DNA from: Kudoa neothunni
Taxonomy: Eukaryota; Animalia; Cnidaria
Assembly (NCBI GenBank): GCA_964304625.1
Contig: OZ199838.1
Location: 2,043,129-2,107,128 of the forward strand
Length of the DNA: 64,000 nucleotides
Direction of reading: 5' to 3'
The notes under the pieces are model-generated. The model did not search any database, was not told the origin of the DNA, and was given only the letters and a program-made list of their open reading frames with translations. Below, piece after piece: positions 21,009-64,000 of the stretch; the first letter of the stretch is position 1, and every line of letters begins with the position of its first letter. Both the position numbers and the translations under genes were made by a program.

Positions 21009-22070
21009 GGCTAAATTACAGTGACTGGGACTCGCTTGGGATAAAATGGACAAACTTTGATAAACATTGTAACAATTAAAATATATGATTGTTACTCATT
21101 ATATATTTAAATAACGTTGATAATTCTTTGCCGAAATATTTTCTCCAATACATAAAATCGGCAACATAATGAGGAAGTGTTTCTGGGTTTATATTTGTTG
21201 CGTTCCGATATTTACGCTTAAAAGCCCCCCAGGTGGCTTCAATTCTGTTAATGTATATTCCCTCAGAGAAAATAAACTTCCTTCGGTAAATAACTATCCC
21301 AGGCACAAAACCCAACTCAGTCAAGCTATCATACTCTTTCCAACCGTTCGCCCAAATAATCGAGTCTTCTTCGACGTTGTCAAGGATTTTTTTCAGGCAT
21401 GTCTTTATTTCTTCGCTGAGTTGAGTGCAAAAAACCATTTCCATTTTCGTTGATACCATTAATCATCCAATATTGTTGATTACGAAGAATCCTTCCCACG
21501 TTGTATTTTATTATAAATATAGCGGTCTCATCAATTTGAACGATAACTCCCTCTCCGCCAATTTTGGAAAATTCCTCATCCAATTTATAGGTCATAAAAC
21601 CATATATTACATTTATCCATTCACATATGCACATATGGTGGAATTGGATGATATTCCAATATGTTTTCGAATTTTCTCATAAGTCATGGATGGGTTTTGA
21701 ATTGTCGAAATGATAAATATGAGGATTTTCCACAACGGAAGTCTAGATATTTCAAAAATAGTTCCCTTTCAAATCTGTCTTTTTTCTGCATAAAGTGCAT
21801 TTATACTGATATCCATCATCAGTATCTTCTCTTTTAGAAAAAAAATTTTGACCGACACACAAATATTGAGAATAAGTTGGTATCAATCCGCGATTTTGTA
21901 ATGTCTTTATTGTATAGTCTAAATCATCACGAAGATGGTCATAATCCATATTAGTGATATCATCAATATTCTCGAAAGTATATATTTTCTTGTTAAAATT
22001 CATCGCGCCACAAATACAACGATCAGTTATGAATATTGTCGGAGCGAGGCATAGTCACTGTAATTTAGCC
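21009..22070 (-). mobile_element. Merlin (IS1595/ISXO2-like DDE) transposon, frameshifted
   Basis: TIRs of ~29 bp beginning GGCTAAATTACAGTGACT at both ends. Transposase fragments carry YQYKCTLCRKK, KIGGEGVIVQIDET, IWANGWKEYDSL and INRIEATWGAFKR, split over three ORFs. No TSD recognised. Confidence 0.85.
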
Positions 22071-30657: not shown

Positions 30658-32819
30658 TTAAACAACGTTAACCGAAGCGACTTCATGGAATGTTGGAAAA
30701 TTGAGACCATATATGATCGCCCTTACCTCGAAGAATCCTTTTTTGTTAGGAACGACATCAAATTTGGCTTTCACAGTTTTTCCAATATTGATTTTTCTAC
30801 ATGGAAGCTACAAATAAAAGAGGAAATAGTAAAAAAAACTTTCGCAGCAGCTTATGCTTGGTAGGGGTGAACTCGATTTCAAGTCTTACGATAACTTCTC
30901 TCAGTTTATAGGGCATAATATTATTCATTCTGACAACGATTCTGGATTGTTGACAAACTTTTATTTCTTTTGGAAGAACTATGTCGAATGAAGGAGTTTT
31001 AAGTGACAGTTGATATGATTGTACCGACATTTTTTCTTTTTCGATGACAAAAGCCTCGACCAGTACCGCACATAAATCACTTTTGACTTTACTGAGGATA
31101 TTTTTGCCATCTACCTTAAAATTCGTGCTACTTTTCCCATCAGCATTAACCGTGACCTTCGTATGCGTAATTTCTCTAGAACGAATATTTGGATGTTGTA
31201 AAACGAAACACTTTATCAGTAGGTCAACTGGCGAATCCGACACCAGTAATAAATCCAAATTCAGGTCTAAATCCTCGCCCATCAGAATATGGTCCTTATT
31301 ATTAACCTGTTGAATTTTTAATAATTTCTCTCGATTAGGAACTTCAGTGTAAGCGCTATCAGCGGCCTTTCTAGCCATTATATCCAACAAGGAACCATCT
31401 GTATATTTGTAGTTTTCAGTGACATCACGTCTAACGTCAGATCCAACTGACTTGGTACTTATTTCATGCCCGACTTCGGAGATTTTGATGTCGAAGGTTT
31501 CTTGTTTACCATTCACAATTCGCTTAAAGACAACATCACCGTTCACCTCACTGAATACGAACCGAGAATCAAAACCAACTTTCAGGTCACCAGCTTTAAC
31601 TGCAGCCACTGGTGATGGTCCCAAAGTGTATCTTCCATCAATACTAGCTTCCTGGGGCGTAGAATCACACACCTGCCATCCGTTATATTTCTCGAAGCCA
31701 CTGCACTCCATGTAGCATTCGTTCCAACAATGGAAGTTCCAAATACTGTCTTTCGTGTGATATCTCAAATAATTGTAATCTTTGTCATAATACACTTCCA
31801 TATCAAGTGTGTCATCAGTGTCATGAAGACAGTCGAAGCATGAAATGACTCTACAACCAATCCCAACTAATCGCATAACTAAACGAATGAATTATTAGAT
31901 TGGATTGTATTGTATGCAGAGAATCCAGAACTATACTTGAACATAACACTGCGGCAAAGGTAAAACATTGTCCATATTTGACTGGTTCCTTTTCTTTCAA
32001 GTACTTTTCAAATATGGCTTTAGAGCCAGTCCAATAGTGAGGAGGTTTGCCATCTGAATATTCTCCGTCCCATCTTCCTTCTAAGATACCGTCGAAATCA
32101 ATATCATTAGTTAGTGTGGTGAGTTCTCTCGCTAAACTAGAAGCACTCGACCTTAATGATTGATCAACATGCTTCAATAGATATAGCAACGTTTCGATTG
32201 CAGGCAAGCTAAATTGATCAAGAGACCAGTGATAAGCGAATATGGAATTGGTACTTCCCTGATAGATAATGGTTTTTGTGTTGAGAATGTATTCTTTCCT
32301 ATCTTCTTGTTCGGGCATATAGACTTCATCATCTGCAAGATGTGTTTTTATTGTAAATTCAGTGAAACAATTGTTTAGGAATTTACTTGGATTCCAAGGG
32401 TTGAATAGCATTAAAAATTTTTCCGACCCTAATTTTCTGTCCCCGCTCATCATTGTAATTTCATAATCGCCAGGTTCGCAATCACAGGGGGTCTCCAACA
32501 AAAATTTAGTTTTTTCATCGGGTAATTTAAACGCTTTTAGGTTCCAATTAGATTTTAAAACATTCGTAGCAGCATAGGTCTAAGAACCATTCACATACGA
32601 TGAGCTACTACTCAAAACTACTATTTTGTTGCTGTCCACCTTGCCATCATTTGCTGCTAGACTGATTCTTATTTTATCCGGATCAATGTCGTTGCCAGCG
32701 TATAATTCTTCTCTCAATAAAAAGGTTAACGTGCCACCTCGACGAATGACAGGATGAGTCCATTCGTAAATAGTGGGCACTTCGATCTCATGTACGGATA
32801 CACTTTCGGCTAAACTCAT
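30658..32819 (-). CDS. Transglutaminase (protein-glutamine gamma-glutamyltransferase), copy A, 5 exons, triad intact
   Basis: Motifs PVIRRG, LFNPWNP/NDEVYM, GILEGRWDGEYSDG..P..WTGS, YGQCF (Cys at 31965-31967), WNFHCW, GWQVCDSTPQE, GPSPVAAVKAG, FVFSEVN, ISTKSVG and YKYTDGS, followed by C-terminal barrel regions. The frame is open after manual splicing. Confidence 0.93.
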
Positions 32820-38198: not shown

Positions 38199-40350
38199 TT
38201 AAAAAACATTAACATATTTGACCTCTTTGAATGTAGGGATGGAATTCCCATATATGATGGCCTTAACTTCATAGAATCCCTTTTTGTTAGGGAGGATACA
38301 AAATTTTTCACGAATTGGTGATCCTTTCGTTATCTTACTAAATCAATAACTGAATTTTAACAATAGAAATTATTTTCAAGACTTTATACACTTCTTGGGT
38401 ATATTCTCACAAAAATCCACTTTAAGCTTCACAAACACATTCTCCAAGTCGGTGGGAAAAGGATTAACTAAATTTATACATATATGGCATCTTTTATGAG
38501 TTGAAACTTTTTTCGGTAAGATTATATCAAATGAAGGGGTTTTTATGGGGATACAAAAGTTCCTTTTATAAGCTTTTTCTCCATCGACTACAAAAACTTC
38601 CAGAAGCACATTGCATAAATCACTTTGGACCTTTTCCAGTATATCCTTGCTGGCTATTTTAAGCCACATTGTATTGGAATTGTTTTTTTGAAATAAAATT
38701 TTTTTGTTTGATATCTCTTCGGACCGAATATTTGGATGTTGTGTCACAAAACATTTCATTACAACTTCCATCTTCGCACTGGACACATATAATACATCTA
38801 AACGGATATCCAAATCTTCCCCCATCAAAATATGATCCATGTTGTTGAACAATCGAAAGTTAACAATTTCTATGTCATGTTTTTGATCAAACAATCCATC
38901 AGCGTTTTTTCTTGCCATTATATCCAACAGTGATCCGTCGATGTATTTATATTCGTGGGTTATATCCATGCGATGTGTAGATCCCACAGCCTTTGTGCTA
39001 ATGCATTTTCCAATTCTTGCAATTTCAATATCAAAAGTTTCAAATTTAGTATTCTTCCATTTTTTATTAATAACGTCTCCATTTACCTCACTGAATATGA
39101 ATCGGCTGTCATATCCAACTGTAAGATCTCCTGCTTTGATAGCAGCGACAGGAGCAGGACCACATGTGTATCTTCCATCTTTGCTTCTTGTTTGAGGTGT
39201 TCCATCTACAGCATGCCATCCGTTGTATTTTTCTACGCCGGGGCATTTAATATAGCATTCATTCCAACAATGGAAGGTCCAAATGTCATCGTTTGATAGG
39301 TGGCGCAACAAATTACATTCTTCGTCATAATACCTTTCCATATCAAGAGTGTCGTCTGAGTCATATAAACAATCGTAACAAGTTACTATTCGACAACCGA
39401 TTCCGGCCAAACGAAAAACTAAATTAAAGCATTAATTTCAATTATGAAAGAAATTTCTAATATTGTATACGTGAGCACAACAACGCTGAAAACGTAAAAC
39501 ACTGCCCATATTTGACAGGACGTTTTGTTTTTATGTATTTTCTAAAAATCTCTTTTGAGCATGACCAATAATCAGGCGATTTTCCACCCAAAAATTTAAT
39601 CCCCCATTTACCTACCAGAACACCATCGTCGTCCAAATTATTTACCAATGCAGTTAACTCTCTTGCTATTTTATAAGCACACGATCTTAGTGATCTGTCT
39701 ATTTTCTTGAGAAGATATAATAGAGTTTCGATGGTTTCCTTGCAAAATTGATTAAGAGACCAATCATTTCCCCAAATTGAAAAGCTGTAACCTCGATACA
39801 CAATTGTTTCTGTATTCAGTATATACTCGATTCTATCTTCCCCTTCAGGAATATATGTTTCATCGTCTATAAATAATTAAGTAACACTATCAAATTTGGC
39901 GTATCTCTGAAAATTCACTAGGATTCCATGCATTAAATAGCATTAGAAACTTTTGCTTCCCCAATACTTTTTTACCAATCATTATGGTTGCCTCGTATTC
40001 ACCAATTTCACAATCGCAGGGTGTTGTTAAATAATAAACAACCTTTTTCCTAGGCTCCACAGATGATTTAAGAATCCAGTGAGATGTCGATTCCTCTTGT
40101 TGAGTATATAACTAAATTCGATTTTATAACAAACAACATACGTTAATTGTACTATTTGATTATCGTCCAAGCATTTTCCGTTCGCGTGCAAACGAATCCA
40201 TATACTTAAATTGCTTTTTTTCACTACTGGGGCGATTTGTTTTTTCATTGAAAAGCTAAATATCCCACCTCGACGAAGGACAGGATGGGGCCATTCAAAG
40301 TTTTTATTCATATCATTCTCAGGTACGCATATACTCTCCGAAGATCCCAT
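38199..40350 (-). CDS. Transglutaminase, copy B, 5 exons, triad intact, N-terminal MGSSES
   Basis: Same four intron positions as copy A. Motifs YGQCFTFSALLCS (Cys at 39499-39501), WTFHCW and GWHAVDGTPQ. The frame is open after manual splicing. Confidence 0.92.
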
Positions 40351-41156: not shown

Positions 41157-44100
41157 GGGATTGGCTACTCCAACGGTGCGGAATATTTTTTAGGTTTCTA
41201 ATGATAATTAAAATCTGATTTCAGATATATGTTTGGCTAATTTTTACCTATAAGAATGTTATTGTCACGGATCCTGTATCCATTAATCTCCATTATATAC
41301 TATGAAAGGAATTACGACTGTTAATTACTTATCATATAATACATTCGACGGCTACCATTAAATTGTGTCTCCCTTAGAGCGAACAAATAAAAAGTCTCCA
41401 CGACAGTTATGTTTTTCATGAAAAATTTTGTGATGAATATTTACACGTTACCACCGTTACAATGCTTGAAATGAAAGGTTTACAGGTGTCATATAAAATT
41501 ATTTAATATAAATATTTCTTTTAATAGTCAAAAATATCCTTTTTTTAGAAAAGATATATTTGTAATCATTTAAACTTCGAATCATTAGGCACTGAGTTCG
41601 CACTTGTCTAAGTCCAACAAATTAGAGTTTGTTGGTAAACAATATATAATATATAGTTTATCGATAAAACATTAAAATATAACAAAAAAATTACCCAAAA
41701 AGATATATTCTATATATATAATTAATTAAATTTATAAAAAAGAATTTTGGTCCACAACCGCGTATATTAATGTCAATGTGGTTTTCGCGTGATTGATGCT
41801 TCAGTTAAATAAAAAATGAATAACCTTAAACTATCACTAACTAAGGTTTTAAAAGTCTAAATTATTAACAAAATGAGACAATCACGTTGGTACTAGAATG
41901 GTCCTATACACGGATTATGATCAACTCACGTTTCACGTTGGACGTGAAGGCACGGCAAATGAAGGAAATCCAGAATTCATTGTAGGAATGAAATTCAATT
42001 CTTACGATGAATTGAAATATAAAATTACCCAATACGAAATCAAAAATCGTTGTAATATAAAAGTAAGGGATTCAAGAAAGATTTCCAGTGCTCAAAGAAG
42101 TTATAACAGGACTTTTAAACCTGATATTGTTTATTACGAAATAAGGTATGTGTGTTATTTCAGCCTGAGTTACAGTAGAAAAAATTCTGGCGAAAGGAAT
42201 AAAGCAAAATTTAAACAAGGCTGTCCATTCCATAGCAGTCTTCGTGCCAGCTTGGACGGAAATTTTCTAGAGGTTAAATCTGTAAACTTAGGACATAACC
42301 ATCCCTGAAACCCAACTATTTTTGAAAACTTACCTGATCAACGAAAAATTAATTTTAACGATCCATTCTTAGCTGAACTGCTATTTCTCGGGGAAAACAG
42401 GAAAACAATTAAGCTAAAACTAAGACAAGAAAGAAGTATTAATGTCATTGAAATCACTTCACAACGTTAAAAATTCTTCCTCCTGCGAAATAAAAGATGT
42501 TAGCTAGGTTATAAAGCTTCTTAAATAAAATTATAAGTGCGAAGTTAAATTATTGGCCCCTGAAAATTCCCTAAGCGGGATATTTTTTACCGATGAAAAA
42601 ATAAAAAATGTAATCAACTACTTTCTAGAGGTTATGTTCATGGATGCCGCATATAAACTGCTTAATTCAAGGTAGTTAATAATTTGAACCGACTAGTTTA
42701 TTAGTTTAAAGTTCCGCTTTACGTAACAGCAACACAATACTCGTGTGATCAAATGCACATTACAAGTGCGTGTATACTATATTAGGAAACCGAAAAAAAA
42801 ACAATTAAATGGTTTTTACATGAGCTAATAGATGGTGCTCATTGTTTAAAGTTCAAATTTTCGATAATAGTCACTGATGAGGATCGCACCCTAAGAAAAT
42901 GTGTAAAAGAAGCTTTTAATGCAGCATCCCTGATCATATGTAGATTTCACGTTAATCAGGCCTTCCAAAGAGAAATCCTTCCAAAAAAGTATATAGCTAA
43001 TATTGAAAAGAAAAATTCACTTCTGGCAACTCTTCAAAAATGATGTGTGCAACGTCCAAAACCGAATATGATGAACTGAAAGTCGAGCTTTTCCTACGTG
43101 GTGTTACTGAATTCAATTCATATTTTGAAAAAAATTGGAACCCCATAGCTTAAGTATGGGTTATTGGTTTGAGTTCAGCCAACAATTATTTCAATAACGC
43201 CACTAACAATCGACTAGAGGCAATGAATGGACAGCTCCAAACTGTTGTTACAAAATTCTCGATTCTTGAGGATTTTTTCTGATATTTAGAATCCATTAGA
43301 ATTGAGAGGAAAAATAAAATTGTTTCAGATCTTATTAAACCTCATTCAGTGATAAGTGAAACATACAATGGTTATAATAAATTACTTACTCCGTTTGCGG
43401 CAAATATAACTTTGTCAAAAATGGAAAAGCTCAATAGTTTAAAGGATTATTCATATAATAAAAATATCAACACATGTAACTGTCCCCAATATCTATCATT
43501 CAACTTCTCATATGTACATATTTTCCATCAAAGAGCGTTAAATGTAGTCGAAATGTTCGATGAATCTTTGCGACGTCGTCGATGGACTATGGACGCGACG
43601 ACATGTTTCTGAATTTTTAAGTACATTTACGATGAGAAATAATACGTTAAAGTCAGAAAAGCCAATCTTAACAGTTAAAGCAAAGGATTCGATTCAAAGT
43701 TTCTCTCATAGACTCAGATTATCTTCAACTTACACAAATAATTTAGCAGCTACGTCAGCTGAATTTTGTGGAAACTTCTACGAAATATGTTTAGATGCTT
43801 ATACAGAGTTAGAAAATATTATTATTAAACATAACGATAAAAAAACTGACTACTGTGATAAAACTAAGTAGATGACATTTTATACACAAATAATGAGTAC
43901 TTTAGTGAAACATGATTGCAGCGATGAAGATCCAGTAAATATAGCTAGTTGCGTTAACTCTGTAATTGAGTTGTCGAGTAAATTAATTGATATGGTATTA
44001 ATCATAATTTCTCTTATTTATAGATGAGCCCCAAGTTACGACAGATGAAATAATGGTATCTTTTCCGTAATTTCTTAAATTAACAAAATTAGATGAAATT

Positions 44101-50081: not shown

Positions 50082-52230
50082 TTAAACTATGTTGATAGAC
50101 TTGATTTCATGAAATATTGGAATATTGTGACCATATATAATGGCTCTAACTTCATGAAAACCTTTTTTATTGGGGGCGACATTGAATGTGGCATCAACAG
50201 GAGCATCTTTAGCGACCCTCCTAAGGAAAACAATTCATTCAATAAATAAAAATTGTAATAACTGTATGTGCGTCTTTTGTTTTTTATCTGAAAAATCAAT
50301 TTTAAGCAAAACTTTAACGTTTAACAAGTCCGTAGGCAAAGGATTCTTCATGTGAACACAAACTTCAAAACTTTCACCTACTGTTACCTTTTCCGGTAGA
50401 ATTATATCAAACGAGGGAGTTATAATAGATAGGCACAATTCTTGTTTGAATAGAGAATCCCCATCAGTGACAAACACCTTCGACTATTACTGAGCATAAA
50501 TCCGTTTTTATCATTCGAAGAATATCGGTTGCGTTAACTTTGAATGAGCATTTATTTTCTATCAGTTGTTTTTAGATTAATCTTCTGGGTGAATATTTCT
50601 TTTAAGAGAATGTTTGGATGCTGAAAAATATGGCATTTTATCACTACGTCCAAAGTGTTTTCTGATGGACGAAATATATCAACGATCGCATTCAAATCTT
50701 CTCCCATAATTATGTGATCTTTTTTATTCGTGGTTTTCTATGCGAATAACATCCAATTTAGGTGTAGAATCACCTACCTTCCCATCAGCATTTAGTCGAG
50801 CCATCACATCCATAAGTGAACCATCTTTGTATTTGTAATTGTCGGAGATATCGTTTCTCATATTAGAACCAATTGCCTTGGTGCTGATCCTGTGACCTAT
50901 CCTTGAGTTATCAACCCTAAATACCTTTTTCTTGCCGTCGACTATTTTCTTATGGATTACATCCCCATTCACTTCGCTAAATATATACCTGGCGTCATGA
51001 CCAATCTTTAAATCCCCTGCTTTAATAGCAGCTACCGGTGCTGGGCCACAAGTGTATCTTCCATCATTACTAGCTTCTTGAGGTGTGGCGTCACATACAT
51101 GCCATCCGTTGTATTTTTCCACTCCAGGGCACTCCATGTAGATTTCAGTCCAGCAATGGAAATTCCAAATACTGTCAACTGTGAGGTCTTTAATTCGATT
51201 GAATTCATTGTCATAATACACTTCCATATCGAGTGTGTCATCACTATCATGTAAGCAATCGAAACAGGTAATTACTCGGCAACCAATTCCAACCAAACGG
51301 AAAACTAAAACATAAATTTATTTTCGCTTGAATTATTTGGAATCTATTCGGTGATAAGTACGTGAGCATAGCACAGCAGCAAACGTAAAACATTGTCCAT
51401 ATTTACTGGTCGTTTATCTTTGTTGTATTTTTCAAAGATAGCTTTTGATCCAGACCAAAATGAAGGTGATTTACCATCGGAATAGTTGGAATCCCATCTG
51501 CCGACAAGAATACCATTATCGTCTATATTGTTGACCAGAGCGGTTAGTTCTCTTGCTAGAAGGAAAGCGCTTGATCTTAATGGTTTGGGGATCTTTCTCA
51601 GTAGAAATATTAGCGTTTCAATAGTGGGTCTGCTAAATTGATCCACCGACCATTCATTTCCACCTATCGATCCTCTGCTACCATAAAATACCATTGTTTT
51701 CGGGTTGAGGATATATTCCTCCCTATCAGTTTCTTGGGGCATATACACTTCATCGTCTAACACAAGTAATTAATTATTGTATCCTCATTGCATAGTGTAT
51801 AAAATAGGATTAAAATTACTGGAATTCCATGGATTGAATAGTATCAGAAAACTTTTTGTTTCCAACATTCTTCCCAAATGCATTGCAGCTAATTTGTATT
51901 GACCAGGCTCACAATCGCTAGGCGTTTCCAAACGATAGCTGTACTCTTCGTTGACTTTTCCGGCAAACTTTAAATTCCACATGAATTTTGAAACTTTTGT
52001 TGAGTTGTATGACTATGTTCGTATTCAGTCCAGCAAAATTTTAATTTAAATACTATTTTATTTTTGCTTATGGGGGAACCGTTCACCATCATGTGGATCT
52101 TTATTTCTTTAGTTTGTTTCTCATTTTTAGGAAACAATTCTTCTTTGATTGTAAATTCGTATATCTCTCCACGACGAACAACTGGATTGTCCCATTCGAA
52201 GTTTCCTTTTGAAGTATTGCCAATTACCAT
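50082..52230 (-). pseudogene. Transglutaminase, copy C, with four single-base frameshifts
   Basis: Same exon structure as the other copies and all triad codons present (YGQCF, WNFHCW, CDATPQE). The frame breaks at ~51403 (-1) and at ~50735, ~50557 and ~50477 (+1 each). Confidence 0.75.
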
Positions 52231-53414
52231 TTGGATCTCCTATAAACACTTTCTAATGATTAATAATTAATCTTAAATACTATATAATACTAAAGCCTTC
52301 GTATTAGTAAACGAAAAAACATATATTATTAATCTTAAACGATGAATCACCCACGTTAATGTATAATATCAAACGTTATATTCAGCCAACCAACGTGATA
52401 TATCTTTTCTCGATAGCATAAACTTGTTTTTATTTTGCAGATCTTTGTTTTGTTGAAGAACCTGCATAATCCACCAGATGCTGTCCGCCCCAATTAGGGA
52501 ATAAGCGGCATATGTTAGAAAATATAATAAACATATTTAGTATTAGTTTAGCACGCGTGTTATAAAAATAATGAGTATAGCGAGTGTCTATTTTTTGACA
52601 TTATGAACTATTACAAAACAACATATTTAAATATCTAAAAAATAATTGTACCTTTATCAACTCAAATAAAACATTTTTATAATCTTCCAGGTCGAAAAAG
52701 CATTGTATATCTTCCTCACTGGCTTATGTATTAGATAAAATCTATGACAATAGAAAATGCGTTCAGAAATTAAGAAAATAAAATTAAAATTTTGTTCCAA
52801 TAAAGGAATCAGTTGATATATCATCCATATAATCCTATAGGCTTTTGGTAGCTTAATATGAGCAAAGGTATGATTCATTGTTACGAAAGATCATACATTT
52901 ATTTTACGATAATTAAATTTTATGGTCATTATATTTACTTAATAAGATCATGCTCAATATATTCATTTTTATCGATCTTGTATCACCATTATCATATGCC
53001 ATTAGTTTCTTGTAATAGCTAATATAAACCCTTTATATCAATGTTCCCAACCTGGGTCGGCATATTGATTAAAGTCGGTCAGTGAGAAAGTCTTTACTCT
53101 AAAAAATTAGTCTTCGTGAATTCTTGGTTATAATAAAACCTAACTTAAAAAACATAACTCTAGAACAATAATAATATATTAATATAAATATACGTGGCTA
53201 ATATAGTCAGGAGTTCCTATTCATTTAGTTTAGCTAGTCGGGATTCCGTAAACCAGAAAGTTTGGAAAACGGTTCCCTGGCGAAATTGATCATCTATCGC
53301 TACCTATTTCGTTGCGGAAAACTCCCTGTTTTCTCATATACTCGAATGATCCTTCTAATAATATTTGAAATATTATTACTAAAATTCTAATAGTTCATCT
53401 TTAACCCTCTAAGG

Positions 53415-54070: not shown

Positions 54071-56633
54071 GGTAATGGGGGAGTATCCAGCTCCAAAAAT
54101 TCAGCATCTTCCCGTGCATGCGCACCTCCCGATTGTTTTATAATTTAATTCACAACATTTTTGAAATACTGAGTGATCACAAATCAGACCAAAATTTTTA
54201 TTCTAAAGAGTTGCAAAAAATCACACTTCGGCAACAATCGGACAGCGCGCAATGTAATGCGCATAACCTTTTCATAACCTTTTTCAGCCTAATTTGTCAT
54301 AAATAATTCATGAAATTTATATTTTTAATTTTTGTAATATTATCAAATATGTTCTTTGAATTATTAGTGAAATTGAACGGAAAGGATATATGCCAGTTAT
54401 TTATTGTGTTTTTTAACCTTAAGTTTTCATTTTTTACGTTAATGACTCTTAATTATTGCTTAAAAATTTATTTTTTAGTTCATATATTTTTTTGGTGTAC
54501 TAATATTAAATATATAACGGTATACCGTACAAACAATATTGATGAAATTGAAAACCTTATGATATTACAAGCAACAAAATGAATGATTCGTTAACTACTT
54601 ATAATTAGATTATAAATAAGTCAACCATAAATTATTTAATGTTGATTTATACAAATATACTGACCACTTTGAGGAACGATCCGTGATAACTATAATTCAT
54701 AGTTAATGTATTGCATAATCATATTGATTTTCATAACTGAGAAACAATTTGTGAGTCCAAAATTAAAAATTTGTTTTTTTTTAAATTTCATAATCTAATT
54801 TCATTTATAAGGAAAAATTATTTTTTCATTAATAAAGCCTTAACGGTAAATCATAAACATATATTTTAATTTATTATCATTAGACGAAAATACGCGAGAA
54901 ATCTCAAATATATTTATTGCAAATATAATTTTAATTTTATAGTTAATACTAATATGGTAAAATCTAAAGTTTTCTTAAGTTTTTTGACAAATAGCAGTAT
55001 ATAAAAGATGAGAGGAATCAAAACACACAATATTTTGTTTCACTAGCTATTATTTAATTGGTAAATAGTAGCGATCGCTGTTAAAATATATTCGAAAAAA
55101 TTCCAATATCCCCTATGAATGGAACGCGATCATGATTCATGTAGGTAGGAATCCAGCTGATTTCGTGGCACACCGCTCATTTTCCGAATGAGTTTTGTTT
55201 TGAGATGATGCCACACAACCTCGACCGTATTAGTATGGTAACCCTCTGGAGTGACATACTCTTTAGAGTGATTAACAGTTATATGGTTATAGCCGTAAAT
55301 TCGGAGAGAGGTGTACCCAACCACTCGTCAGTGTAGATTGTACTCCCGTTTTCAACTTCCTGTAAGACGAGTTGGGTCAACGTTCGTTTTATCCCCTTTT
55401 TGGACAATAAAAAATCTTGATTCTAACAATTTTCGTTTGCCATCTTCATCGACAGAGCATTCGCAAATGCCAACAACCCAAGGGCCATTTATTCTGTAAC
55501 CATACCTTTCATTTCTCGCTGACGTCTCAAAGGAGTCGCTCCACGGAATAACCTACTCCTTAAGAAATAGTTAGGGGTGGCCAACCATCTGTCCATGCTT
55601 AAAAATCTTCCCCGGTTGTTTTTTACGGCGACCTCTTAATAAACATTCGTCAATTTCGACGATTCGATTTTCTCCGCCCATTTTCTCGCGTCGTTGGAAC
55701 ATTTTATAACAAATATTCCTCAACGCTGAATACCAAAATGTAACGGTTTTCTCGGTTATTTGAGTTAATGCCACCACCCTGCATCTTTGTTCTTCAATAC
55801 ACCAAAGGTATATTAACTCAAATAGCTGAGACACTGCTAATTTGGATATATTCGTCCCCATCGCGTTATTGATGCCAAAGAAGGTAGAGGTCCTGGGTGA
55901 AAAATGCGTTCTACAATCACTCCTAAAATTAATATTTTAAAAACTAAACATAAAATAAAAGTACTTTGAACATGTATACGAGTATTTCTCAATATCATCG
56001 TCACAAAGATCGATTGAAGTATTGTTTCTTTTTCTCGTTGTAGCTTGGAGGCGTAGAGTGTTATACCTGCGGCAATTCTTGCACCGATCAGGCATTTTTT
56101 GTAATAGACTCTTATTCGCTAGGTAAGTAAATAGAGCACTCACATTAAACAAAAGTTTATAAAATTTACGCTGAAGTGAAAAATCCGCCATCGAAAAAAC
56201 ATTTGTTAATCGGATTAAATTATAAAAACATAAATTTTTAAATTTAACGTGAGATATAAATATAGCAGTTACTATTACATCTATAATTATCGAAAATTAA
56301 AAACACCACTAAATCAAATATCTCTTATCCTGTGTGATTCTTTAATCGCGAGAACATATTTGATAATATTACAAAAATTAAAAATATAAATTTCATGAAT
56401 TATTTATGACAAATTAGGCTGAAAAAGGTTATGAAAAGGTATGCGCATTACATTGCGCGCTGTCCGATTGTTGCCGAAGTGTGATTTTTTGCAACTCTTT
56501 AGAATAAAAATTTTGGTCTGATTTGTGATCACTCAGTATTTCAAAAATGTTGTGAATTAAGTTATAAAACAATCGAGAGTGCGTGTGCACGGGAAGGTGC
56601 TGAATTTTTGGAGCTGGATACTCCCCCATTACC
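54071..56633 (-). mobile_element. Merlin (IS1595/ISXO2-like) transposon with ~285-bp TIRs
   Basis: 54071-54355 and 56351-56633 are near-perfect inverted repeats beginning GGTAATGGGGGAG, with a perfect 8-bp TSD (GTCAACTT). The transposase (56191 to ~55060) has CKNC...C..C, IVEIDE, GPWVVG, YTDEW and HTNTVEVVW, one intron and frameshifts. Confidence 0.92.
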
Positions 56634-58490
56634 GTCAACTTATTGAAAACAGATTAGCACCAACAATAATATTACCACTGCACGCGATTTGCTAATGGGT
56701 TCAGTGATATGTGTAGATGACTTTAATTTATATTATTTAAATTCAATTGTAACTTTAACTTTGCTCTTTTAACACTTTAAACCAGGGCCTCCCTATTGGG
56801 GATGCGGATAACAAGTTTCGATGTACCTAGATCATTTAAGTGATTATAATTACATAATATTAAAATAGTGAAATGTTTGGTATCAAAAATGGTAAGGAAG
56901 AAATCACCTACAAAATCTGTATGTGAATGAAACATAACACCAAATTTTTCACCAATAATTTTATAAATATAAAAATTTCATAAAATCTAAAATTACTCAA
57001 ATAAAAACAATGTCTCGACATATACATTATGTCAGATCGAAATAAGTCGACTACATCTCGTCTAATCATGTTGTGTTAACCACTTTTTCATTTTCTGATG
57101 AATTTTTATTTACTAATAAAATAAAAATTCGTATTACAAAAATATTAAATTCAGTTTAAATTTTTTTATTTATGTATTGAAATACCACATTTTGAAATAG
57201 TTAATATTGGATTTAAATATTATTCATCAACTGGGTGGATGACACATTCTTAAATTAATTATTCAATGCGATCAAAAAGGTTTTTATATCATGATTTGAA
57301 AGAAATCTTATCAAATAATATTAAGAATACTGTGGTAGAATTAACAAAATTTTGAACTTTTGGTAATTGAGGTATTTGAATAAAAATGTAAATTTTAACA
57401 AGAAATAATTTGGTTGAAATTTTGGATGAATACAGAAATTAACACAAATTCAATAAATGATATAAACTTATTTATCAAAAACAATTAAAAACTGTATTGT
57501 TAACATATACGTTACTCTGATAAATACAATATTTTGCATTTTTTTATTTGGGAATTATTACCTACAAAATCAAATCTAAAAATGTCGGAAAATGTAGTTC
57601 CATTTTTTTCCTAACAAGCATAAAATTATCCTGCATAAAAACAGTTTATAATATAATTTAAAAAAATATTTGTACAAATTTGTTAGGAAAAATACGTATA
57701 ATTTTTGTATGTTTTAACAAAATACCCCAAAAATATTTATAAACTAAAAAAATGGTTATACTTACAAAAAAAGCTGATAAACGATATTTGATTAAATATG
57801 ACTACTAAAAAAAGCATTTCTCTTCATAATATACGAAAATTTCAAAATATGGGTTCTGATAGTGCATTTAAGCATTGAATTAATCAAAAAAATTATACTA
57901 AAACATTCAAAATAATTAAATAGGATTGTAAAAAAAATAAACACATTCCGAAATAAGAACGAACGTAATGGAGATAACACGTGATCTAAGTCTTTTTGTT
58001 ACAATCTATAAATTTAGAAGTGACCTTTGTGGTGGTACTATAGAGTCCATAATTTCTTGTTTTAAAATATGGGAAGAAAAATTTGATTAGTGAAGATGTT
58101 CTTTAGATGCCACAATCTTCATCATTACATTGTCAATTAGAGGATAAAATTCCCCAATCTTGCAAGATTTGCATGCTTTTGTGTAAAATTTAATATTTAA
58201 TGATAAGACAAATTTTTTACTTAAATCTCGTTAGCTGAATATTGTCACCCACAAATAAACAAACAATAAAAAATTCCATAATAAAACCCTAAATAACTAA
58301 TGAAGTTATCAAAGATAATTAAATAGTAGTAGATTGTGAACTAACTTTGGATAATTAGTATACTTCCTTAAATCATAAGTGAGGTAACTGATTCAAGAAG
58401 AATAAAATATTTAGTGTAAACATATTTTCAAATGAAGGATAAATACTAATTATATCCCTTCCTATTTTTAATCCTAAAGCTTTTTCCAAT

Positions 58491-59733
58491 ATGGCAAGCC
58501 ACCAAAAAGTTGGGAAATGGAAGGAAGAATACGCCAAATATGGTTTACTAAAAAACTCGTCGATGGTGTTGAAAAACCACTCTGCGTTCTTTGTAATGTC
58601 GTTTATTCAAATTCCAACTTGAAGCCATCAAAGTTGCTTCAACATTTTGAGAACAAACATGGTGGTAAAACACATATAAGAAACGATATCCAGTCATTAA
58701 AAGTGAAAAGAGCGCGCTATGACCTAAGGGGAACACTTCCTATATTGGGGTTCATTTTCCTGGATAAATCCTTGTTTCTCGCTTCATTCAAAATAGCTTA
58801 TGAAGCGGCAAAAGCAAAAAAACCCTGCAATATTGCAGAGACGTTGATAAAACCATGCATTTTGGAGGCAGCAAAGATTGTTTTGGATGAAGAAGCAGTA
58901 CAAAAACTCAAAGGAATACCACTATCCAACAATGTTATCCGCAATAAAATTGATGAGATAAGTGCTGATATTCTTGATCAAATAGTTCCGGATATCAACG
59001 CATCTCCAATGCAAATTTCACTCCAGCTGGATGAGTCAACGGATGTCAAAAACTTTACCGATTGGTCTGAAATCAACAATGGATTATTGTATCAAAATAA
59101 TAAATTTCATACGCGGAAGAGCTTTAACTCATAGACTTTTTAAAGCATTTTACAATGAAATTAACGAAGAAGCTTGTGTTCTTATCTACTACACAGAAGT
59201 AAGATGGTTGTCTCGAGGATGTGTTTTAAGTCGGTTTTTTGACTTAAAATATGAAATCGAGAAATTTTTATTGGATCAAAAGTCGGATCTTGCTAATATT
59301 CTCAAGTTCCAAAATTTCTCAATAATGTTGGCATATCTCACTGATACCTTTTAACACTTGAACGAATTAAATTATTCGCTTCAAGGAAAAGATATAAATA
59401 TTATAAATGCTTCTGACAAGTTACGAACATTTCGCTAAAAGCAAACCCTATGGATTGTCAGGATAAAAAATAAAAATGTGAATTCCGAAATTTTGTAAAT
59501 TGAAATAAAAGATCATTCGGAAAAATCGAAGGAGTCTTTTGATGACTATTTTGCTACTGGAAACTTAAATGAATCTGATAGCTGGACTGTCAATCCATTC
59601 GCCTTCCACATGGAAAAAATGGAGGACGATGAGGACGAAAAAGAAAATTTGATCGAGTTGAGATCGTGCCAATCAATGAAACTGTTGTTTGAGTCATGTT
59701 TACTTGAGCACTTCTGGTGCCACGCCCTAAATA
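58491..59733 (+). mobile_element. hAT Buster/ZBED8-like transposase remnant, internally deleted
   Basis: BED finger PLCVLCNVVYSNSNLKPSKLLQHFENKH, plus motifs KPCNIAETLIKPC, IPLSNNVI, SLQLDESTDV, TEVRWLSRG and LAYLTDTF. Confidence 0.85.
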
Positions 59734-60980
59734 CAGTCGAGATTGGATATTGCGTGATTTCATCTTCAATATATCCAGGGAGCAGCGTGAAATTTCTGAG
59801 AAAATTAGAATAATACAATATTACAATTCAATAAAATCAATAAAGGACGCAAAGAAAATGACGGTTGAAAAGTTTAAACTTAGTGGTATGATTATTTTTA
59901 ATCGATAACAATTTATTTCTTAAAGGACATTCAACGCTTGACAGAATTCTTTCTCATGAAACCAAGCTGAAAAATTCAGATGTTGCATGAAATAGGAAGA
60001 GGCATTCAAATGGAAGATTTATCAACATAGACGAATAAGTTATAAATGGTTTATCAAAAAACGCACCAATGGTCACATTATTTCTGGTGACGTAATACTT
60101 GAAATGGCCACCATAATTGCCAGAAAGAATGAAGTTAAAAATTTTCAAGCATTTTCATGGTGAAGCTGCGAGCGCTAACGTCGCGTCTATTGATTCGTGG
60201 ATCTATGAAAATAAAAATTTGATAAGCATGTACAGCCCAAAAAATATAATCACTATTGACGAAACTGGTTTGTTTTATGAGCAATTACAGAACAGTAGTT
60301 ATTTATTAAAAGAAGAAAATGACATTAAAGGTAAAAATCTATCGAAAAAAAGAATAACGATTTTGGTATCGTGCTCTTTAAGCGGAGAAAAGTTGCCCTT
60401 AGTCGTAATTGGGAAATACCAAAACCCCAGGTGCTTCAAGGGGGTAAAAAATTTACCTTATGAGTATTATGCCCAAAAAAATTCTTGGATGACCTCTGCT
60501 ATTTTTTTCCAGATAATGAAAAAATTAAATTTTAAAATGGAGTCAGAACAACGAAAAATACTAAAAGTGTTTTAAAGCCATTCAACCTCGGAGTGATTAA
60601 TTTTCTTAAAAGTAGATATAAAAAAATATTGTCAACTGTTTTAAAAAGTCGGGCATATTTAGCGAAAGTAAAAGCTAATGCGAACTTCAAATATTAATTC
60701 ATTATCATAGGAGATACAGAGACGGAAACAAATGATAAAATTTTCGAAGATGAACAGAGTATAAATATTCAATAAAATTTCAATATTTTTATAGTCGAGG
60801 AAGAACCAAAAGTTCCAATAAAAGATATAAAGCATGCCGTAAGTACATTAAGGAAGGTGTTTATTCAGAAAGATCCATCTGGACTCATCGATCTTCATCC
60901 GATAATGGATCGAATTTTAAAAATATCATCTCAAAGATGGCATCAAACTAAAATTACTTCATTTTTTCATAAAAATTAAT
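59734..60980 (+). mobile_element. pogo/Tigger (DDE_1) element inserted into the hAT remnant
   Basis: Begins TA|CAGTCGAG immediately after the hAT coding sequence. ORF 60117-60575 has DETGLFY, KKRITILV, EKLPLVVIGKYQNPRCFK and NSWMT, and the element ends QTKITSFF. The right TIR was not found. Confidence 0.8.
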
Positions 60981-61254
60981 AATTTTGTCTGGTTGAGTTA
61001 AAGTAGGATAAACGCACAAAACAAGTTTAAATCGAATATTTTTACAAGTGCGCATGTGCGTGACTCGATATTGCTTAAAACCTTTTTATTGCGTAATTTT
61101 TTATGAATAAATTAAAAGTTGTAAAAAAAGAAGATAATAAGAGAAAACAGTACCATAGTATTTAATTTGTAATCTAAACGAAATAATGTCACAGACGGAA
61201 AAAACGTAAAGTAATTCAAAAATTTTCATCCGACTGATTAGCAACTTGATCACG

Positions 61255-63408
61255 TTAAGTGATTCTAACAGTCTTAACTTCATGAAGAGTTGGGATGTTG
61301 GGCCCACGTATGATAACTCTGATTCCATACATTCCTGCCAACTTAGGGATGACAGTAAATTTGGCATTCAGGATATCATACTTGCTCACCTTTCTATAAA
61401 AATACTTAAAAAAATACATAAGGATTCAATAACCCGATAAGTTTATTCTCATTCTCATCACAAAAGTCCAGTTCAAGCAACACATTCACATTTTCCATGT
61501 TATAAGGCAGTGTATTATCCATTTTGACCACAATTGGACAACTTCTATCAAGAAAAATTTTATTTGGCACAGTAATAGTTATTGGAGGAGTTTCTATAGG
61601 ATAACGAACTTCTTTCTTGTAAAACTGTCCTTGGTAGGTGAAAAAACCTTCCACCAAAACTATGCATGCATCGCTTTTGATATGACCAAGTATGGTTCTA
61701 GCATCCACTTTAAACAGATCGCTTTTTAATTTTTTGCGGCCAAATTTTAAAGTTTTAGTAACTATTTCGTCTGACAGGATGTTTGGATGATGTATCACAT
61801 AACATTTGAGAGTTAGGTCAATTTTATCCCCTTTACCATATTGCAGATCTACTTTTAGCTCTAAACCTTGCCCCAACAAAATGGATTGTTTATGAGAAAC
61901 ATTTTCAAAGGTTAACGATATCTTTTGATCACTTTCATCATCTTGCGTCGTGTCGGCGTTTATTCTGCTAACTTTATCCAACACTGAACCTTGTTTGTGT
62001 TTGTAATTGTCGGTGATATCGGACACATCATTCGATCCAATAGCTTTAGTGACAATTTTTTTTCCTATTATTGAATCTTGCTCGAGAAACTTCTGGGGTT
62101 TGCCGTCAACCATCACCATTTGTATCACATTGGCATTCACCTCACTGTAAACATACTTGGTTTCAAAGCCTACGTTTAGATCGCCGGTTTTCACAGCAAT
62201 CACGGGAACTGGACCACAGGTAAGATGTGGGTTTTCTGATGTCTTTTTTGGTGTTGCATCGCATACCTGCCATCCATCATACTTATCTAAGCAAGGATAC
62301 CGTATGTTACATTCCACCCATGAGTGGAAGGTGAAGACAGTGTCCTTTGATAGCTCACGTATCAGTTTGTAATTTTCGTCATGATACACCTCTAGGTCAA
62401 TGGTACCATCATTGTCATTAGCTATACTGTATCCGGTGACTATTCTAGAACCAATTCCAGCCAATCGACAAACTACACTCGACGCTGGTAAAAAGTACAA
62501 TCATCTTCCAATTAATTACTTGAACACAGAACGCCTGCGATTGAAATGCCATGACCGTATTTGACTATTTCCTTTTCAGCGAGAAACTTTTCAAATATAC
62601 CCTTTGAACCGGTCCAATCTTCTGGATTTATTCCATCATAGGATTCCCTTTCCTTCGTAAATTCAAGAATTCCATCTTTCTCCAAATTGCTTATCATCAC
62701 AGTGAGTTCTCTTGCGAACTTGTACATACAAGATCTTGAAGATTTATCCATTTTTCTTAGAATAACTAACAGCGTTTCAATAGCAGGTTTGCTGAACTGA
62801 TTCAGACACCAATTCTTCGATTTTATATAATCAGGGTGACCATAGTAAATAACTGTTTCTGGATTCAGAATATATTCATCTCTCTCAACATCATTAGGCA
62901 TATACGTTTCATCATCTTAAATCATAGCAATAATTGTATTAGCATAATAAAATGCGATAAATTTGACAGAATACTTATATTCCATGGATTGCAAAACATC
63001 AAAAATTTTTCCCTCATTAAAACATTATCTCCCATCTTTAGAGTGATCTCATATCCTCCGATGTCGCAATTAACAGGAGATTCCAGCTGACAAACTGGAT
63101 CCTCGCCAGATTTGCGAATCACTTTCACTTTCCATTTGGTTTCCGATGTGTCTTCCAATGAGTACGACTAAATTCATTTCAAATTTTGACAACTTACAAC
63201 AAAATACAATTTTAGCTTCATCCATAATATCACCATTAGCTTCTACGCGTAAAGAGATTTTCTGCGAATATTCATCGATGCCTTGAATAGTATCCTCCTT
63301 GAATGAGAAATTGTAAATCCCCCCTCGACGAATAATTGGGTCGTCCCACATAATCGAACCAACCGATTTAACCTCATCCTTAGCATTCACACTTTGCGAT
63401 CCACCCAT
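61255..63408 (-). CDS. Transglutaminase-like pseudoenzyme, copy D (catalytic Cys->Gly), 5 exons, N-terminal MGGSQS
   Basis: Same four intron positions and an open frame after manual splicing. The active-site motif reads KYGHGISIAGVLCS (GGC at 62548-62550). His (FTFHSW) and Asp (CDATPKK) are retained. Confidence 0.88.
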
Positions 63409-64000
63409 GTTAATTTTTTATCGCGATCCCAACGAGAAACTATCAGTAACGATATTAGTATCACTCACGAAAACTCTTTTATTATAAATATAATACTACA
63501 ATCTACCTTTTAAAAACAATTGATTCCTATGCATAAAAATAAGAATAACTAACTTTCAGTTCTAAAATATTCATTATTCCTATGAGTGAAACTGATTTTT
63601 TTGAATGTTCCGCAGTCAAATTTGATACATTTATTAAAATAGAATATAAAACTTACTTGATATTTTATCTATTTTTAAATAATAAATAAACCATAATTCA
63701 ATCTTAATTTTATACAAAAATTTTTTAGTTGAGGTTACCGTCATCATCAAGTTCAGTCATAGTTTGTAAGAACATCGTTATATAAATTAAAACATCCAAT
63801 AATTAAAAGTTCTAATATATTATATTTTAATATCTGAATAATTTAATATCTTTATTATTTTATCAACTTTAATGCAAGCAATGATTAAATCCAAATAAAA
63901 CAACCTAAATATGACTATTCGGATCGAAATCATTTTATTATTATTCAGTGATTGGACCATGTTTCATGTTACTATATTATAAATGTAATGATTAATTAAG

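Follow-up and report, generated by a model that had tools for sequence, protein, structure and literature searches.

A transglutaminase gene that keeps its reading frame after the loss of its active site raises the question whether it serves a new role, works by altered chemistry, is on its way to disappear or is an artefact of the assembly. Such a gene, here termed copy D, lies in an array of transglutaminase genes of Kudoa neothunni, a cnidarian parasite of fish muscle. The window, i.e. the whole stretch of 64,000 nucleotides that was analysed, corresponds to G000:C1:2043129-2107128 in a genome of 40.26 Mb in four pieces with ∼30% GC and introns of 40–60 nt, the second contig measuring 12,040,071 bp. 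The published assembly (40.2 Mb, three chromosomes, N50 12.0 Mb, GC 30.4%, QV 48.5) derives from ∼7x reads of an infected yellowfin tuna, with haplotypic duplication stated, and few transcript reads from the host mapped to parasite sequence (PMC12239612). No paper on myxozoan transglutaminases was found in the library searched. Copy D is best described as a real pseudo-transglutaminase, probably functional, that evolved independently in this myxozoan, and a scaffold role is suggested for it by analogy.

Copy D is a four-domain transglutaminase gene with five exons on the minus strand (63408-61255), and it codes for 655 aa without any internal stop. Exon 1 (63208..63408, 201 nt) starts with MGGSQS and begins the N-terminal β-sandwich. 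It is followed by exon 2 (62975..63167, 193 nt), exon 3 with the first half of the catalytic core (62520..62915, 396 nt), exon 4 with the second half of the core, β-barrel 1 and most of barrel 2 (61434..62472, 1039 nt; Pfam Transglut_core) and exon 5 with the end of barrel 2 (61255..61393, 139 nt), all on the minus strand. The four introns are GT-AG throughout, measure 40/59/47/40 nt and lie in phases 0/1/1/2. Exons 2 to 5 have identical lengths in copies A and E, exon 4 of copy B is one codon off (1036 nt), and the intron phases are common to copies A, B, D and E. The GC content is 38% in the exons vs 25% in the introns. The uninterrupted five-exon frame with all domains, which a sequence-only reading of this stretch had described, was confirmed by these models. 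An upstream coding exon that would remove the MG start can be rejected, as an in-frame stop lies 9 nt upstream of the ATG, no AG acceptor is present between this stop and the ATG, and the starts of the paralogues match.

The spliced models of copy D were joined from genomic exons, and searches and folds were run with one exon at a time. With domain profiles built from homologues, the sandwich was recognised in exon 1 with an E-value of 1e-10, the core with 2e-31 and 4e-52 and barrel 2 with 8e-9. The profile of barrel 1 was weak in every array copy, D included; this domain was modelled at high confidence and fold-matched. The structure model of exon 4 had a mean pLDDT of 88, and its fold search matched factor XIII, TG2 and TG3. 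The N-terminal β-sandwich, the papain-like core and the two C-terminal β-barrels of an animal transglutaminase are all present in copy D.

Concerning the active site, the roles of C277/H335/D358, W241, H305/E363, N333 and the calcium sites follow PMC11252922, and residues are given in TG2 numbering. Copy D carries the changes N229S, W241K, Q276H, C277G, F278I, H305N, W332F, N333T, Q362K, E363K and D400N, and it keeps H335, D358, T360 and P361. On the minus strand, the codon of the oxyanion-stabilising W241, TGG in copies A, B, C and E, is AAG for Lys (62653..62655). YGHGI stands for YGQCF (62545..62559), with CAA/CAG TGT TTT replaced by CAT GGC ATT, by which the nucleophile is gone and F/W278 has become Ile. 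Asn replaces His305 (62417..62419), one member of the amine-activating pair, and the residues of the neighbouring calcium site S3 are retained. FTFH stands for WNFH (62324..62335) with the catalytic His335 in place, and DATPKK (62243..62260) contains the catalytic Asp358 followed by TPKK for TPQE. Of the calcium ligands, sites S1 and S2 are lost in part and those of S3 are kept.

Among the animal homologues, Cys occupies position 277 in 170 of the 175 sequences with a residue at this site, and Trp occupies position 332 in 178 of 179; of the strongly conserved transglutaminase sites, 49 of 61 are kept in copy D. The sequence-only reading had reported a change from YGQCF to YGHGI by several bases per codon, the loss of the GRW/GKW tryptophan and altered IWNFH and TPQE motifs, and had called the protein catalytically dead. 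Each of these changes was found again, and the catalytic Cys (GQC), Trp241 and the H305/E363 pair of an active transglutaminase are absent, with His335 and Asp358 present. As judged from its residues, copy D is dead by all canonical criteria, and no canonical catalysis would be possible.

Seven animal-type transglutaminase genes were found in the genome, namely the array A–D, copy E ∼50 kb upstream of A, and the dispersed copies F and G. Copy A (30658..32819, minus strand, 654 aa) has the full canonical catalytic set and no Gly2. Copy B (38199..40350, minus strand, 653 aa) starts with MGSSESIC and keeps the triad and both Trp, with the changes H305Y/E363T/N333T. Copy C (50082..52262, minus strand), which was read with X at the breaks, is the opposite of D: its catalytic residues are intact, and its frame is broken by four single-base frameshifts. 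It has no in-frame nonsense substitution, its start is uncertain, and it is either a young pseudogene or a product of low-coverage read errors. Copy E (G000:C1:2021672-2023822) is intact, starts with MGHGESIC and has a changed calcium site S3 (D306N, Gly at 308). Copies F and G (G000:C1:10963573-10966000 and G000:C2:632780-635500), modelled by automatic spliced alignment, are canonical and intron-rich; G appears to start with MGC.

In the tree, copies A–E were monophyletic at 100/100, with the branch of copy D ∼2.5x longer. The amino-acid identity of D to A, B, C and E is 39–41%, compared to 52–55% among these four. Copy D fits the five-exon subfamily, which is marked by shared intron positions in phases 0/1/1/2, loss of three introns that F and G retain and a YGQCF-type core. 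A tree forcing D together with the frog protein 4.2-like sequence was rejected (p-AU 9.9e-10). Given its position inside the array clade and the rejection of the 4.2 clade, copy D is a lineage-specific derivative of the Kudoa array, independent of EPB42, and its likeness to EPB42 is convergent. The independent origin that had been proposed from the letters alone was thereby upheld by the phylogeny. Copies B and D were sisters at 89/89 in one tree and in 28% of the bootstrap trees when the trait columns were dropped; with this fall in support, a loss of H305/E363/N333 shared by B and D through descent is not established.

Close relatives of copy D were sought in several collections. No orthologue was found by a word search with exon 4, and an exon 4 profile search matched vertebrate and hydrozoan transglutaminases only. 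No close relative was present among 1.8 billion representatives, where the best matches were 29–40% identical, and a metagenome scan gave distant transglutaminases only. These blanks do not show absence, and proteins of K. iwatai are absent from NCBI. With an exon 3 profile, a single subfamily member was retrieved; its Cys is intact, and it is not an orthologue of D. It lies on an ENA metagenome contig (L051:504-1599), is of the array type with the same intron positions, and its catalytic set is intact as far as the contig reaches. The sequence L051 probably comes from another myxosporean, a hint of a parasite so far unrecorded from that sample.

Other elements were observed in and beyond the array. 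Transposase fragments lie between the copies at 21076-21459, 41898-42308 and 60117-60575 (ISXO2-like DDE, ZSWIM3/FAR1-like and DDE_1), and an inverted repeat pair of 285 bp was found at 54071-54355 and 56351-56633. The other Transglut_core matches of the genome are not transglutaminases; they are four NGLY1-like peptide:N-glycanase paralogues (L021:3556-3960, L022:4035-4454, L023:3183-3560 and L024:4813-5211). Within this family, the catalytic Cys is replaced by Ser in L023, and Cys and His are both missing from L024; dead duplicates of transglutaminase-fold enzymes thus recur in this reduced genome.

A 200-N gap follows directly after the window, and the next contig opens with a 99.85% identical copy of its last 8.08 kb (window 55918-64000; G000:C1:2107329-2115421), which holds a twin of copy D. 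The repeat probably reflects overlapping contigs or haplotypes that were not merged; since it is bounded exactly by the gap, the twin is less likely to be a true tandem gene. The twin has a 4-nt duplication in exon 5 (about 61299) that replaces the last 14 residues by 7 others, with loss of the last conserved strand. This duplication may be an error or a segregating loss-of-function allele. The window allele itself shows no disablement of frame, splicing or start.

Measured with our own simple codon model against paralogues with near-saturated synonymous sites, ω on the copy D branch was 0.24 (profile interval about 0.15–0.38) vs 0.13 in the background, at similar synonymous length. A value of ω = 1, as expected for a dying gene, was rejected (p = 8e-8). 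In the barrels only, ω of copy D was 0.47 and neutrality was not rejected (p = 0.17). The identity of D to the paralogues was 57–58% and 65–68% at first and second codon positions and 40–42% at third positions. Since an ω of 0.24 alone would also fit a long active past followed by recent decay, neutral decay was simulated. The excess change in copy D needs t of about 0.19 per site, at which 15–18 stops should have arisen, and not one of 2000 simulated frames remained open; an open frame tolerates only about 0.02–0.03 neutral substitutions per site. At t ≤ 0.03, changes in four of six core catalytic codons had a p of 3e-4 or less. The changes at strongly conserved sites fell on 7 of 12 reaction-specific sites vs 6 of 51 other conserved ones (p = 0.0015). 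Copy D has been maintained by purifying selection after the loss of its active site, and recent decay does not account for its changes.

Different explanations can be weighed on these grounds. Errors of a low-coverage assembly are hardly credible as the source of the changes, even with ∼7x reads behind it and several single-base frameshifts in the nearby copy C, because the substitutions in copy D are multi-base, in frame and spread over many separate codons. Moreover, the active site reads identically in the contig beyond the adjacent gap, the published QV stands against errors, and contigs of a public run span 61234-63698 with zero differences to the window (at depth 2, and probably built from the reads of the assembly itself, hence no independent confirmation). 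The earlier statement that no single-read error is involved was right in this respect. It is very improbable that copy D is a recent, simple pseudogene which lost its Cys first by chance. The amino-acid rate of ∼2.5x that of the paralogues would fit, but at least ten function-specific codons have changed, including three with two-base changes, without a stop, frameshift or splice loss. The neutral probability of this is negligible, by which this explanation is largely refuted. An enzyme of changed chemistry, in which His335-Asp358, perhaps with the new His276, would activate water or another nucleophile, is improbable too. H335, D358, T360, P361 and the S3 calcium ligands are retained, and papain-fold enzymes have known active-site migrations (PMC10318531). 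However, the nucleophile position is Gly without an in-register Cys/Ser replacement, and W241 is absent. In addition, the frog protein 4.2-like sequence also keeps His and Asp after the loss of Cys and W241, and in human 4.2 none of the three triad residues is left, so that His and Asp may simply erode later.

Somewhat more weight can be given to a protein that was long maintained without catalysis, is now dispensable and is starting to decay, with the frameshifted twin as early loss allele; this, too, appears unlikely. It would agree with the 4-nt duplication in the twin, with the raised ω overall and in the barrels, and with an array that turns over and whose neighbouring copy C is already frameshifted. 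Against this, the window allele is wholly intact and is the one shown by the public contigs, the twin lies at a contig end of a ∼7x assembly and may be an error, and the open frame caps any fully neutral period at the length given above. A maintained pseudo-transglutaminase that came from array duplication, lost its chemistry, has its fold kept by selection and likely acts as an adaptor beside active paralogues is the explanation we hold to be likely.

The start MGGSQS (63391..63408, minus strand) was present with its MGxxxS N-myristoylation-type motif as previously described, and it aligned with the starts of the paralogues. This type of start is common to the Cys-intact copies B and E and to L051, which have Cys8 in addition (MGSSESIC, MGHGESIC and MGSLESVC), and copy D is without Cys8. 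An N-myristoyltransferase gene is encoded in the genome, and among the 157 homologues that begin with Met, 14 have MG. As the motif occurs in the Cys-intact copies B and E and in the active relative L051, the signal is ancestral to the subfamily and did not arise with inactivation. Myristoylation as the pseudoenzyme's own specialisation, as the sequence-only reading had it, was therefore not borne out. Without Cys8, copy D is predicted to have probably a single lipid anchor rather than two.

Pseudoenzymes from tandem duplicates are common in general. In the case of copy D, a tandem duplication within the Kudoa five-exon, mostly N-acylated subfamily (A–E) gave rise to the gene, which then lost the chemistry of both half-reactions (C277, W241, W332/N333/Q276, H305/E363 and parts of S1 and S2), with selection keeping its frame, splice sites and four-domain fold. 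Through its outer surfaces the protein may serve for binding or as an adaptor, with the inherited myristate as a loose tether to the membrane. With the substrate channel (W241, W332, N333, Q276) eroded, a substrate trap is unlikely and a surface-mediated role more likely. Provided that copy D is functional, we would in our judgement give a protein 4.2-like adaptor or scaffold about an even chance on the basis of analogy, a modulator or partner of the paralogues A/B/E a clearly smaller one, and a non-classically secreted host-facing protein the smallest. Of the earlier interpretation, the dead protein, its maintenance by selection and its independence of EPB42 stood, and the tie of lipidation to inactivation did not. 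About two-thirds of the ancestral genes are gone from Kudoa, and against this background the retention of a dead copy suggests that it is truly needed.

In TG2, transamidation is impaired when H305 or E363 is lost, and deamidation persists (PMC11252922). With its H305Y/E363T changes, copy B is by analogy predicted to be a deamidation-leaning, doubly acylated transglutaminase and may be a deamidase. It is possible, though rather doubtful, that the whole array reflects a division of labour by stepwise dismantling, with A as cross-linker, B as a glutamine deamidase with a lipid anchor, its triad kept and H305/E363 gone, E with an altered calcium site S3 and D as non-catalytic scaffold or regulator conserved across Kudoa. 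If true, the history of protein 4.2 would have been repeated in an invertebrate, including a naturally occurring intermediate that only deamidates, and this in a parasite that otherwise discards most genes. The array also offers a test set for the role of H305/E363 in deciding between transamidation and deamidation, as A is complete, B is predicted to lean to deamidation and D is dead. With an independent second case in a cnidarian, the four-domain transglutaminase fold would prove to be repeatedly reused without its chemistry, and similar residues would be the first to go, namely Cys, W241 and Q276, with His and Asp following.

Compared to animal transglutaminases (TG2, factor XIII-A and cnidarian ones; PF00868/PF01841/PF00927), copy D is homologous in sequence and fold over all domains, with 22–28% identity to those outside the array, and it differs at C277, W241, W332, Q276, N333, H305, Q362, E363, N229 and D400. 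A papain/transglutaminase fold without catalysis, as in copy D, is also found in fission yeast Cyk3, XPC/Rad4 and FBXO21; these, however, have single transglutaminase-like domains in other architectures, whereas copy D is a full four-domain protein of the animal type. According to titles cited in PMC11854935, Drosophila TG-A undergoes two fatty acylations and exosome secretion, and TG1 carries myristate/palmitate. Copy D likewise has an N-terminal acylation signal, but TG-A and keratinocyte TG1 are active, and the signal of copy D consists of Gly2 and Ser6 only, the Cys8 found in B, E and L051 being absent.

Among inactive four-domain transglutaminases, protein 4.2 is the textbook case. EPB42, the tetrapod erythrocyte protein 4.2, resembles copy D in its four-domain fold, the loss of the catalytic Cys and W241 and the Gly2 start. 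It is myristoylated and clamps band 3 and ankyrin by its outer surfaces (doi 10.1101/2022.02.10.480008), and it arose as a tandem duplicate in the TGM cluster that was initially active and lost its activity later in separate lineages (PMC11152450). EPB42 is not orthologous to copy D, which does not descend from the tetrapod TGM2-TGM7 cluster, and its setting of erythrocyte, band 3 and ankyrin is inapplicable to a cnidarian parasite without erythrocytes. Whereas EPB42 is lipidated, lipidation of copy D is only predicted and would be inherited from active paralogues. In place of the catalytic triad, human 4.2 has A/Q/H and copy D has G/H/D. A notable parallel is seen in the frog 4.2-like protein (P0229), in which Cys and W241 are lost, Gln276 is changed to His, and His and Asp are kept, just as in copy D.
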